Of a stretch of DNA of 32,000 nucleotides, positions 3,722 through 16,648 are shown piece after piece. Made by a program: the position numbers and the translations under genes. Within the stretch, counting starts at the first letter, position 1; the number at the start of each line of letters is the position of its first letter. The notes under the pieces are model-generated. The model was not told the DNA's origin. It ran no database searches and was given only the letters and a program-made list of their open reading frames with translations. The stretch comes from Wallemia ichthyophaga EXF-994 (lineage: Eukaryota > Fungi > Basidiomycota), in contig NW_008806274.1 in assembly GCF_000400465.1 (NCBI RefSeq), positions 240,244 through 272,243 on the forward strand. The letters run 5' to 3'.

Positions 3722-4482
3722 TCTGCAGTGTTGAAAGTTGTAAACCAAGCGCGGCTTTAAGGGTCATGACGATCAGCAAACTCCGCGGAATCGAGTTTTC
3801 GGTTGTTCAGAAAATGCAGAATATACTTTGAAAATAACAGCGTCTATATCTGCCAATATTTGCTACTCATGTAGGTACAAATTTTCTATTCCAAGGAACA
3901 CACCAATTGGACAGAGTTAGAAGCCTTGAGAGGTCATAGGGAATAAAGAAAATCGCTAGCTTCAAAGGGAGCTCTGTCCGGGAACTTATACATCGATAAA
4001 CGTGTTGGTTAATCTGCAAGACACTCATGTTGACGCCAGGCATTGGCGTATGCTTTTCTAGTTTTTGGAAGCGGCCAAAGCTGAGTTATCACTGCTTGCA
4101 CTGCCTGTGGACGATTTCGCGCTTTATGCGCTCGCATTGGATCGGTCCTGGGCATGTGCCAGCTTAAGGGCATAATTCGCGTTCCTTTGAGCAAAAAAAA
4201 AAAAACAAAAGCAGCCGAAGTCTTACGGCCTTTGAGATGCTCGAAATGATAATGCCATATAAGAATCCCATCACTCCCCAGAAACTCCATCTTTCCACTC
4301 GGTTGAGCTAACCGCAACACAGCTGAACATCTGCGCAGAAAGAGGCTACTTGAAGATTTCAGATGCCATCATATACATCGCTTTACCATATATCCATCCA
4401 CACCAAATATCCTTGTCTGGTTTTACATTTTTGTGATTCTGTGCTGGCGCTACTTCTTGGACAAGTACTAGCATCAGCGGCA

Positions 4483-14267: not shown

Positions 14268-15867
14268 CTAAATGGTCAAACTCTCCAATCCGAATCCACT
14301 CCTCACTACATTCAAATCGGTTTCTATTTTTTGGAGCGTGTTTGTGAGATGACTGAGTCCTGTTTGTTGATTGCGCAATATATCTGACAGCTCCATCATA
14401 CCGTCATCATCCACAACCTGCCAACCTGCGCTTTTAGATGCAGTACCTTCCTCTTTCCTGCTCTTAAGTGCGCCGACGAGTGCCCAGCTCTCATTGACTC
14501 TACCACCAATCCTCGCCTTCTGGATTGTGTTGTTGATATGCTCGTACTCCGTACCCAGCTTCTCCTCTTCTAGCTTTATGCCGCTAGCGCGGAGATTAGG
14601 GAGGAGGAGGTGCAACCGTTTGACAATCTTGAGTATACGTGCGCTGAGTTGAGCATGCATAACCGCCGCTCTCTGCAAACGAGGGCTGTGATCGAGCGAG
14701 GTGTTAAGGAGCATCTTGCGCAATTTCTCCTGTAGTTCACTAAGACGCACAAGGTGGGCCGTCGCTTGCTTGCCTTGAGCTATCGCGCGCTTCTGTACAT
14801 CGTCCAAAGAAAATGCTGGTGCGGGTACTAAGCGTGTTGGGTCGGGGTTCTCGGATACTGCTCGCGCCCATGACTTGTCGTTCTTCACTATTGCTGGTCT
14901 TCCATATTGCGATACTTGCTCGGGCGGTACGAGGTTGTAGAAATAGAGCTGGAATGCACATGATGGGTGGTTCGGGTCCCATGCATTCTTGATTTCTTCT
15001 ATCACCGCTGCTATATCCTTATTCGAGGATTGTGGTGGTCTGCCGACGCTTTGTGAAAGTGTGCTCTGTTGCAATTGTTGGGGTTGCTGGGGTTGCGTCT
15101 GAGCCTGTGATTGACCGAATAAACTGCTCTGTGGCTGTGCTTGTCCAAACAAACTACCTTGAGCTGGTGGTTGCGACTGTCCGAACAATCCTCCACCTGC
15201 TTGCTGAGGTTGTGATTGTCCAAACAATCCTCCAAGTCCACCTGAAGGTGCAGCAGGTTTCTGTCCAAACAAACCGCCCCCAGATGGCTGCTGTTGCTGA
15301 GTGCTCCCGAATAATCCACCTCCGCCAGCTTGTGGTTGCTGTTGTTGTTGTTGAGTCCCTCCAAATAGTCCACCACTACTTGGCTGTTGTTGTTGCTGCT
15401 GCGTGCTACCAAAGAGTCCACCACCAGTATTGCCATTGTTAGCGCTATTCGCGCCGCTCGCGCCAAACAGACCACCACCACTCTGCTGCTGCTGTTGTTG
15501 GCCAGGCTGAGCGGAATTTTGGGTATTCTGGGTATTACTAAACAGGCTTGATGGTTGTTGCGAAGGCTGTCCAAATAGTCCACCCGATGGCGCAGTTGGT
15601 GCAGACGACTGTTGTCCGAAAAGACCTCCACCTGCTTCTGGTTTAGGTGCGGTACTACCGAATAATCCACCACCTGTTGCTGGTTGTGGAGCCGCTGGCT
15701 GCGCTCCTGCTGGCTGTTGTGCTGATTGTCCAAATAGACCTCCGCCGGTCGGTTGGTTAGGTTGGCTCGAGCCTGCACCCGCTGCTGCTCCACCACCAAA
15801 TGAGAAGCCTTGTACGCGTCAATCGCGCTTTCTGCGTCACTTCTTTTCACTCACCACCGAATGACAT
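14268..15867 (-). CDS. NUP57: GLFG nucleoporin Nup57/Nup54, 1 intron (15809-15854)
   Basis: MSFG exon, then an in-frame array of GGLFG repeats separated by Q-rich spacers, then the Nup54-type domain IKNAWDPNHPSCAFQLYFYNLVP...YGRP...NPDPTRLVP and a coiled coil. Confidence 0.92.
15200..15800 (-). repeat. GLFG/Gln-rich coding repeat region of Nup57
   Basis: Repeated GGT/GGA-CTN/TTN-TTT/TTC-GGN units interleaved with CAA/CAG runs; boundaries are approximate. Confidence 0.85.
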
Positions 15868-16220
15868 GTTGGACGTTTGTGTTGATGAGCCAAGTGAGCG
15901 GGTTCAGAAGCGTTAAGTGGATAGTTGAGCTATCAAATACTTGAAACCTACAGTTTAGTTTTACTTGTACCAAGTCGTCCTCGTTATCCCGCACGACGTG
16001 ACATGAACTCAAAGAGTTTTGTATAGCTTTTATTAACCTAATTGCATCCCGAGAATTCACAGATGACTGATTCTGCATACTTAAAAGCAGCCGCGACAGA
16101 GCAAGCAACAGCTCGTGGCTGGTAATTAAAGAGGGATGAAGATTTGCGCGTTTTTTAAAACGATGAAAGAAAAACCGCTGATATATACCAAGCTTCATAA
16201 CGTAAGTATCAACAATCGAA

Positions 16221-16231
16221 TAGTACAGCGG
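16221..16231 (+). promoter_or_regulatory. Pol III A-box-like element in the leader of the permuted tRNA
   Basis: TAGTACAGCGG fits TRGYNNARNNG. It starts 43 nt before G53 of the B box (16264), versus 45 nt from U8 to G53 in the mature tRNA. Confidence 0.6.
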
Positions 16232-16248
16232 GTGCAACTTGCTAGTTC

Positions 16249-16327
16249 ATGATGAGGTCCCAGGTTCGATCCCTGGTATCTGCAGATCTAGCAGATATAG
16301 CTCAGTGGTAGTAGCGCATCACTAGTA
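16249..16327 (+). tRNA. Circularly permuted tRNA gene, predicted tRNA-Thr(AGT): 3' half 16249-16284, 6-nt spacer 16285-16290, 5' half 16291-16327
   Basis: Acceptor GCAGATA/TATCTGC (7/7 WC), anticodon stem CATCA/TGATG (5/5), T arm CCAGG-TTCGATC-CCTGG (5/5), D arm GCT...AGC with GG, variable loop AGGTC and discriminator A. Joining the 5' half to the 3' half gives a 73-nt cloverleaf with loop CT-AGT-AA. Confidence 0.88.
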
Positions 16328-16332
16328 TTAAA

Positions 16333-16337
16333 TTTTT
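16333..16337 (+). terminator. Pol III oligo-T terminator
   Basis: TTTTT begins 5 nt after the end of the tRNA 5' half. Confidence 0.65.
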
Positions 16338-16648
16338 GTCTCTAATTGGAAGATATCATAGGACTCATTTTTACCTCTGTCAATGAATGTTCATTCTTTA
16401 CGCATTTCGGAATGTACGTGTGGGCATTGACTTAGAACGGTGGTCTATGAAGGATTTAGAACAAGTGACGCTTATAAAAGTATTAATGCTCAGGCTAGCT
16501 GTGAATGTGTGAGAATATATGCATTAATACAGCAGTATAAATAGTGTCTGTGTGTGTTGATACTGGTATATCTTTAGAGAGAGAAGAGAGTTCGAAAAAG
16601 AAGAAACAAGTGTTCAGTACTTGAGAGATCGCTGTGGTTGCCTACCAT

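Follow-up and report, generated by a model that had tools for sequence, protein, structure and literature searches.

A probable circularly permuted tRNA-Thr(AGU) gene in Wallemia whose predicted precursor resembles intron-containing eukaryotic pre-tRNA

Results

Organization of the locus

The window analysed here, a stretch of 32,000 nucleotides (nt) from the halophilic basidiomycete Wallemia ichthyophaga EXF-994 (contig NW_008806274.1, positions 240,244 to 272,243), contains at 16249-16327 a circularly permuted tRNA-Thr(AGU) gene, in which a 3′ half, a 6-nt linker and a 5′ half follow each other in this order, with a run of five T (T5) behind them (Table 1). An earlier annotation made from the letters of the window alone (the first-pass annotation) had assumed a fungal host and a permuted pre-tRNA with its junction between positions 37 and 38 (37|38), and both assumptions hold. 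When 16291-16327 is joined to 16249-16284 at this junction, ARAGORN accepts the product as a 73-nt tRNA-Thr(agt), and 37|38 is the sole junction that yields a 7-nt anticodon loop with a purine at position 37. In native order the locus gives no tRNA with ARAGORN and none with Rfam at the gathering threshold, so that standard annotation misses such genes. The sub-threshold Rfam matches (E<=10) are to YrlA (21.7 bits) and to tRNA (18.9 bits, over the 3′ half plus leader). With introns allowed, ARAGORN reports a 'tRNA-Cys with a 442-nt intron', which we rejected as an artefact that merely reuses the real T arm.

The 5′ half supplies the acceptor strand GCAGATA, the anticodon-stem strand CATCA and the loop nucleotides CTAGTA, and the 3′ half the matching strands TGATG and TATCTGC and the discriminator A. 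Leader nucleotides are numbered backwards from -1, which adjoins A38, and trailer nucleotides forwards from +1, which adjoins A37. The T5 starts 5 nt past A37, while T4 is absent from 16205-16332. An intact mature domain with the junction at 37|38, as in eukaryotic pre-tRNA substrates spliced at the canonical position, is present. Trailer position +1 is polymorphic (T/A), as fits a discarded base, and together with an inserted A and terminators of T4 only in two strains this marks the trailer as weakly constrained.

Table 1. Features of the permuted tRNA-Thr(AGU) locus, in window coordinates
Feature	Coordinates	Strand	Basis or remark
TATA-like block GATATATACCA, possible TFIIIB site	16180..16190	+	Kept as GATACACACCA in W. 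mellicola; function putative
A-box-like block TAGTACAGCGGGT in leader, pseudo-A box, possible 5′-half relic	16221..16233	+	TAGCCCAGCGGGT at the matching W. mellicola place; promoter role putative
3′ end of leader CAACTTGCTAGTTC (-14 to -1)	16235..16248	+	Presumed removal at -1|A38
Leader CTAG, partner of C32-G35	16242..16245	+	Sequence, fold energies
4-nt bulge U,U,C,A38	16246..16249	+	Constrained folds; presumed 3′ cleavage site 16248|16249 inside
tRNA 3′ half: A38, anticodon-stem 3′ strand, variable loop, T arm, acceptor 3′ strand, discriminator A73	16249..16284	+	ARAGORN on joined halves
B box GGTTCGATCCC (T stem-loop)	16263..16273	+	Sequence
Linker GATCTA, A73 to G1, without CCA and without T-run	16285..16290	+	Sequence
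tRNA 5′ half G1-A37: acceptor 5′ strand, D arm with true A box, anticodon-stem 5′ strand, C32-U33-A34-G35-U36-A37	16291..16327	+	
Trailer TTAAA and T5 terminator of RNA polymerase III (Pol III)	16328..16337	+	Presumed 5′ cleavage site 16327|16328

The long open reading frames (ORFs) of the window encode hexokinase, Sec61, a sulfite-reductase flavoprotein, Nup57/Nup54, acetyl-CoA synthetase, a Bor1-type transporter, Rsc7 and Pex3. A TTG-start ORF of 128 amino acids (15851-16237, minus strand) overlaps the leader and promoter region in the intergenic region upstream of Nup57; no gene is called at related loci, and this ORF is probably spurious.

Conservation in two species

The region around the gene is identical to the EXF-994 reference scaffold KE007224.1 (L012), and the permuted gene lies at the syntenic Nup57/DUF7137 site in eight W. 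ichthyophaga assemblies (the window reference and seven others). It is also found in the Nup57/DUF7137 intergenic region of four W. mellicola-type contigs (L001, L021-L023) and in a metagenome contig from ENA (L019). Since the arrangement recurs in independent assemblies and in W. mellicola, an assembly artefact is excluded. The Nup57-like ORF shares 99% identity with W. ichthyophaga proteins and 64% with W. mellicola. A search with DUF7137 for further lineages returned the same two species only, plus a short ENA contig ending before the gene, and the Logan contigs of W. ichthyophaga-like (L003-L007) and W. mellicola-like (L008-L010, L020) type end at or before it.

Within W. ichthyophaga (eight strains), the flanks vary at 14 of 93 positions and the gene at none of 79 (hypergeometric 1e-4). 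For W. mellicola, the sole variable gene position is an indel in the linker (CAC versus CACA), with 18 of 120 flank columns variable. Comparison of the two species gives 88% identity for the tRNA halves and 29-40% for the flanks, which are essentially unalignable. Throughout, the cloverleaf is maintained, with 20/20 pairs held in 12/12 sequences; three pairs have undergone double compensatory changes between the species, namely 4:69 (G:C to U:A), 5:68 (A:U to C:G) and 29:41 (U:A to A:U), and pair 7:66 has changed from A:U to G:U. Pair 29:41 links the first and last parts of the transcription unit, which indicates that its two ends have been selected to meet as an anticodon stem. The split anticodon loop is conserved on both sides in both species (CTAGTA and A38). 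Judged from these sequence comparisons, the gene looks functional and under selection as one tRNA.

Predicted pairing of the leader with the anticodon loop in W. ichthyophaga

A canonical bulge-helix-bulge (BHB) motif consists of a 4-bp helix between two 3-nt bulges. The first-pass annotation had described the precursor as a BHB-like splice substrate, in which the leader CTAG and the loop CTAG (C32-G35) form the central helix, TAT (U36-A37-U+1) forms a 3-nt bulge, TTCA forms the second bulge, and TAA with TTG, then TT with AA, form an outer helix. Every base that it named is in place (AA 16236-16237, TTG 16239-16241, CTAG 16242-16245, TTCA 16246-16249, CTAG 16322-16325, TAT 16326-16328, TAA 16329-16331, T5 16333-16337), and the TTCA bulge does comprise 4 nt, one over the canonical 3. 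The unconstrained RNAfold prediction for 16200-16337 that it suggested contains neither the cloverleaf nor the motif (z=-0.80), an uninformative outcome that is common for unmodified tRNA sequences.

Energies were compared with the cloverleaf imposed on the window allele and 45 nt of leader included. The cloverleaf alone has -18.6 kcal/mol, and addition of the CUAG:CUAG central helix brings it to -21.0 kcal/mol, a gain of -2.4 kcal/mol. Extension by the 3-bp outer helix returns it to -18.6 kcal/mol (a cost of +2.4 kcal/mol over the central helix), and the further 2 bp, which complete the motif of the first-pass annotation, to -17.2 kcal/mol (+3.8 kcal/mol for all 5 bp). A continuous helix of C32-A37 with -4 to -9 reaches -23.7 kcal/mol; in this preferred fold, U36:G-8 and A37:U-9 are added to the central helix, giving 6-7 continuous base pairs at -23.7 to -24.6 kcal/mol. 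Cloverleaf-constrained folds generally place leader nucleotides -4 to -9/-10 opposite C32-A37, and also opposite +1 when this is A. With a 19-nt leader and the cloverleaf enforced, the pairing probability (P) of C32:G-4 is 0.79-1.0 in all seven alleles and that of A37:U-9 is 0.74-0.95 in six of the seven. The leader CTAG is invariant in the eight W. ichthyophaga assemblies that span it and in the Logan lineage L003-L007. Base composition predicts that about 3% of random leaders would contain a 4-mer complementary to CUAG at a 3- or 4-nt bulge register if G.U is allowed, and 0.8% under strict Watson-Crick pairing.

These folds bear directly on the possibility that the endonuclease locally recognises the literal full motif, i.e. 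the 4-bp helix, the 3-nt and 4-nt bulges and the outer helix (hBHBh'), for which all the named bases are available. In six of the seven alleles, forming the outer helix raises the energy by +1.7 to +5.4 kcal/mol relative to the central helix by itself. For its pair +3:U-9, P is <=0.002 in each of the six NCBI alleles and 0.23 in the Logan lineage L007/L027. In that lineage A+5 to G creates an outer helix of six contiguous pairs, and in L016 C-11 to U likewise closes the mismatch; solely in L007/L027 is the full motif no more than 1.2 kcal/mol away from the best fold. Other natural variants weaken the outer helix, namely an inserted trailer A (L015, L017) and the change of G-8 to U (L013). The differences between strains at its nucleotides (-8 G/T, -11 C/T, +1 T/A, A insertion, +5 A/G) show no consistent compensation. 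The 3-nt 5′ bulge depends on the outer helix, which is not predicted, and hence is itself not predicted; U36 and A37 are instead predicted to pair in most alleles (P 0.74-0.95). What the folds show of a canonical BHB is a central helix that includes the first two anticodon nucleotides, and what is missing is the pair of 3-nt bulges and the flanking outer helix. The motif further has no equivalent in W. mellicola, its 3′ bulge is 4 nt long, and a local BHB is not required by eukaryotic Sen complexes. Taken together, we regard recognition of the full motif as improbable.

A different predicted register in W. mellicola

The W. mellicola leader ends with CACATGCT or CACTTGCT, has CATGCT or CTTGCT in place of CTAG, and is followed after the 3′ half by a linker of CAC or CACA. 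In the canonical register, C32:G-3 and G35:C-6 alone can pair, with A34:U-5 in addition in L022/L023, such that the central-helix positions read C:G, U.U, A.A and G:C and form no 4-bp helix. This conformer is predicted to be worse than the cloverleaf alone by +3.7 (L001) and +1.8 (L022) kcal/mol. The favoured pairing is instead shifted by 2 nt (A38:U33, U-1:A34, C-2:G35, G-3:U36, U-4:A37, A-5:U+1 and C-6:G+2, with C32 bulged) and gains -8.9 (L001) or -4.9 (L022) kcal/mol over the cloverleaf alone. In ensemble stabilisation compared to 1500 random flanks, the W. mellicola alleles give p=0.001, 0.027 and 0.038, in this bulge-free register. Either of two changes found in nature, A-5 to U or G+2 to C, makes the shifted helix weaker. 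In the aligned register, the central helix is 71% paired across sequences.

The first-pass annotation had suggested looking for compensatory changes at orthologous loci; none is detected for the splice motif, with W. mellicola predicted to use another register. In the fold models, common to both species is the pairing of the last 6-7 nt of the leader with the anticodon loop, and nothing more.

As a separate observation, the distal leader of W. mellicola (L001 complement), GAUYAUCC at -45 to -38, can pair over 8-9 bp with the trailer sequence GGAUGAUC at +3 to +10, enclosing two leader hairpins. A U/C polymorphism there keeps the pair (G:U to G:C), L023 breaks one, and W. ichthyophaga has no equivalent.

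Comparison with a native intron-containing pre-tRNA-His

On the complement of L019 (2799-2883) lies an ordinary tRNA-His(GUG) gene with an 11-nt canonical intron. Since a native tRNA-His carries an intron, Wallemia must have a tRNA-splicing machinery, and the gene serves as a yardstick for its substrates. Folded without constraints, this pre-tRNA forms the anticodon stem, a 3-nt bulge (U,U,C38) closed by U32:A-3, and a continuous 6-bp helix of nucleotides 32-37 with the intron, capped by a UUU loop, and so conforms to the rule of a 3-nt bulge, in which nucleotide 32 pairs with -3.

The permuted precursor shares the anticodon stem, a bulge that includes nucleotide 38, a helix over nucleotides 32-37 and the closure of the bulge by the pair of nucleotide 32. 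It differs in that the intron of pre-tRNA-His is a closed hairpin whereas the permuted helix ends in a free leader and trailer, and in W. ichthyophaga it departs from the 3-nt-bulge rule, since C32 pairs with -4. According to a review, eukaryotic Sen complexes measure their sites from the tRNA body, in a ruler mechanism with roles of Sen2/Sen34, and need no strict local motif. On these models, the precursor is best described as a eukaryote-type, intron-like substrate rather than an archaeal-type BHB.

Upstream blocks and origin of the leader

Amid otherwise unalignable DNA, two upstream blocks are retained between the species, with the consensus GATAYAYACCA and TAG..CAGCGGGT (Table 1); in W. 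mellicola they are located at about 9334-9324 (TATA-like) and about 9291-9279 (A-box-like) on the complement of L001. The A-box-like block fits the A-box consensus and resembles the tRNA's own D-arm, a pattern with a frequency of 2.2e-4 per position in the window. The TATA-like block lies 41/43 nt upstream of it. From TATATA to the A-box-like block the distance is 39 nt, the same as from TATAAA to the A box in the native tRNA-His gene, and from the A-box-like block to the B box it is 42 nt (52 nt in W. mellicola) versus 54 nt in tRNA-His with its intron. Positions 16214-16237 are without a variable site among the eight strains. The conserved blocks may constitute, judging by motif and spacing, a TFIIIC-compatible A/B-box promoter for the permuted gene.

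Two strains stand out in this region. L015 (GCA_004918415.1) has a 16-nt tandem duplication in the putative promoter block, with GATATATACCAAGCTT present twice. L015 and L016 have terminators of T4 only, and their transcripts might run on to the next T5 about 35 nt downstream.

In the leader, CTAGT stands directly before position 38. Along with the A-box-like block, this suggests that the leader is a decayed upstream 5′ half, and that the gene arose from a closely spaced tandem duplicate of which a working A/B-box promoter was kept. A global alignment of the leader with the 5′ half is not significant, as 731 and 775 of 2000 shuffles score as well in what is a crude test.

Copy number

In SRR25394065, the left Logan contig ends at 16264 and the right contig begins at 16299. 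With the k-mer length of Logan, which we take to be 31, this is the pattern expected if 16235-16328 occurs twice with different flanks. The branch at +2 argues against an intact tRNA as the other copy, since T39 would then be shared. Breaks at or in the gene are likewise seen in contigs of several independent assemblies (ends of L003-L007 and L031-L033, start of L027), and six W. mellicola contigs at NCBI end within the 5′ half. From these contig ends, more than one permuted copy per genome is likely.

The metagenome contig L019 carries at about 3990-4200 (minus strand) the Nup57-side flank and the permuted gene as in W. mellicola, followed by a different sequence past the terminator. This downstream flank leads to the tRNA-His(GUG) gene and a DUF6736 gene without an NCBI Wallemia counterpart, and three readings fit L019, namely a second locus, a rearrangement or a chimeric join. 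A search with DUF6736 for the suspected second locus found no NCBI assembly. A simple permuted-tRNA scanner applied to about 90 kb of Wallemia DNA found no further permuted gene, and a 5′-half pattern run against one metagenome gave two chance matches in GC-rich bacterial coding DNA.

Discussion

Based on the conserved halves of the gene, the comparison of two species and the folds of the precursor, we consider it reasonably probable that Wallemia possesses a functional circularly permuted tRNA-Thr(AGU) gene, the precursor of which is like an ordinary eukaryotic intron-containing pre-tRNA and not like an archaeal-type BHB substrate. We propose that maturation would operate as follows. Pol III would start some 10-15 nt upstream of the A-box-like leader block, at a predicted position of about 16205-16213, and stop at the T-run. 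In the transcript, the acceptor, T, D and anticodon stems would form, giving an intact mature domain, which the linker loop closes. The leader's final 6-10 nt would then pair with C32-A37, leaving -3 to -1 and A38 as a bulge beside the anticodon stem. The tRNA splicing endonuclease (TSEN, the Sen complex), positioned by the mature domain, would cut at A37|+1 and -1|A38, and Trl1 would join A37 to A38. As the halves are already connected through the linker, this ligation would yield a circle, from which RNase P and tRNase Z would remove the 3-6-nt linker prior to CCA addition. The circularisation by fungal TSEN and Trl1 that the first-pass annotation put forward is, by analogy with known systems, a reasonable inference.

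Several observations weigh against this proposal. Should intact tRNA-Thr(AGU) genes exist elsewhere in the genome, gene conversion may have mimicked compensatory evolution; the annotated tRNA genes of the genome total 11.55 kb. When the leader is extended to 45 nt, the central helix drops to P of about 0.2 in the window allele and in L017, where G35 to +3 pair with UAGUAC of the A-box-like block. Ensemble stabilisation in W. ichthyophaga, compared with that by 1500 random flanks, has p=0.13 in the window allele and 0.07 and 0.52 in two others, i.e. the modelled leader-loop pairing is not clearly above chance. In W. mellicola the canonical register lies 6.7-12.6 kcal/mol above the favoured fold, the shifted helix of which would bury both presumed cleavage sites. 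The bulge has 4 nt (U,U,C,A38) in the permuted precursor versus 3 nt (U,U,C38) in pre-tRNA-His. Finally, if splicing is cytoplasmic as in Saccharomyces cerevisiae, the circle would need to meet RNase P and tRNase Z afterwards.

Of the structural claims of the first-pass annotation, the 4-bp CUAG:CUAG helix accordingly survives as plausible in the models, owing to its energy gain and its high probability with the 19-nt leader; it loses ground with the longer leader in the window allele and is absent from W. mellicola. Likewise, the BHB-like substrate is reduced to a leader-anticodon helix that starts at C32 and adjoins a bulge with the 3′ site; a bulge-helix-bulge is not predicted.

The failure of the pairing to exceed chance by stabilisation, and the lack of CTAG in W. 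mellicola, would both be understandable if the locus were a decaying relic of a tandem tRNA-Thr duplication that makes no tRNA, the leader CTAG(T) being a leftover anticodon loop. The A-box-like block, located at the distance of a 5′ half, and CTAGT directly before position 38 fit such a history. Moreover, the leader CUAG is palindromic, so that a relic copy of the loop would automatically pair with the real loop, and a relic and a selected helix are inseparable in W. ichthyophaga. Neutral decay should nevertheless have affected the tRNA halves as it has the flanks, in contrast to the 88% identity seen. Nor is it expected to leave zero polymorphism, three double compensatory changes including the one at 29:41 that joins the ends of the unit, and a terminator directly after it, and the leader does not align significantly with the 5′ half. 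We therefore think it quite unlikely that the locus is such a relic; a relic origin of the leader may be compatible with a functional gene.

A functional gene could also mature in another order, with RNase P and tRNase Z cutting the linker first. This would give two base-paired pieces as in a split tRNA, which endonuclease and ligase would then join without a circle. The acceptor stem with its 3-6-nt loop offers both cleavage sites in the primary transcript, and in S. cerevisiae nuclear end processing precedes cytoplasmic splicing. On the other hand, an algal circular intermediate that keeps the linker has been detected directly, and a 3-nt linker would be a very short substrate arm for each enzyme. 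We consider the linker-first order quite unlikely; the sequences and folds analysed are compatible with both orders. It is highly unlikely that the transcript serves as a stable non-coding RNA of tRNA-like form, akin to the tRNA-like module of Y-RNA-like RNAs, and never becomes a decoding tRNA: the covariation of its stems would suit any structured RNA and YrlA is matched over 16231-16345 (E=0.057), yet this match lies far below the gathering score of 69, is due to the T-arm/acceptor/D-arm module of YrlA, and would not account for the conservation of both sides of the split anticodon loop in two species, as a decoding tRNA needs. As an aside, the YrlA model has the T-arm, acceptor and D-arm in permuted-tRNA order and might aid genome screens for permuted tRNAs.

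Permuted tRNA genes of prasinophyte green algae and of the Bigelowiella natans nucleomorph were reportedly described by Maruyama et al. in 2010, with circular intermediates detected; maturation by way of a circle is established for these lineages as well as for the alga Cyanidioschyzon merolae. Like the Wallemia gene these are eukaryotic nuclear or nucleomorph genes; unlike it they belong to algal lineages. For the permuted tRNA genes of C. merolae, an endonuclease and a ligase were proposed to produce a circle, followed by RNase P plus tRNase Z, then by CCA addition (2007; review PMC3978253). The Wallemia gene has in common with them the order of 3′ half, intervening sequence and 5′ half on one strand and the meeting of leader and trailer at the junction. 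It differs by its fungal host, a linker of 3-6 nt versus 7-74 nt, a junction at 37/38 only and the lack of a clean BHB, and its circle is presumed. C. merolae further seems to be without the box-binding subunits of TFIIIC and to rely on a TATA-like element (PMC3978253), unlike Wallemia, where the distance from an upstream A-box-like block to the B box is canonical. The permuted arrangement also exists in the archaeon Thermofilum pendens (Chan, Cozen and Lowe 2011); its archaeal endonuclease depends on a true BHB, however, which the predicted Wallemia precursor does not match. In work on tandem genes, the first copy's 3′ half and the second copy's 5′ half fold together, a ready origin for a leader that resembles a decayed 5′ half; there, an archaeal enzyme and a designed BHB were used, whereas in Wallemia the tandem origin is presumptive.

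No fungal case came up in literature searches for permuted tRNA in fungi, Basidiomycota or Wallemia. In the literature searched, eukaryotic permuted tRNA genes are those of a few unicellular algae and a nucleomorph, and they are usually seen as ancient or alga-specific and as tied to BHB-recognising enzymes and TATA-driven transcription. We consider as likely as not the broader claim that the Wallemia loci are the first circularly permuted tRNA genes known in fungi and in opisthokonts, probably with more than one copy per genome, which use a TFIIIC-compatible promoter of relic A box and B box, in contrast to the TATA-only one of algae, and mature, with no true BHB, through a circle that a ruler-type Sen complex and Trl1 produce. 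If this is true and an intact tRNA-Thr(AGU) gene is lacking, these fungi would rely on the permuted pathway to decode ACU and ACC codons. A conserved fungal case would show that gene permutation is possible with Trl1 and an ordinary Sen complex of the ruler type, that permutation can arise recently from a tandem duplicate, and that an A/B-box promoter can be kept through a retained pseudo-A box. Fungi would also provide culturable hosts, and S. cerevisiae a heterologous system, for addressing how and where circular tRNA intermediates form.

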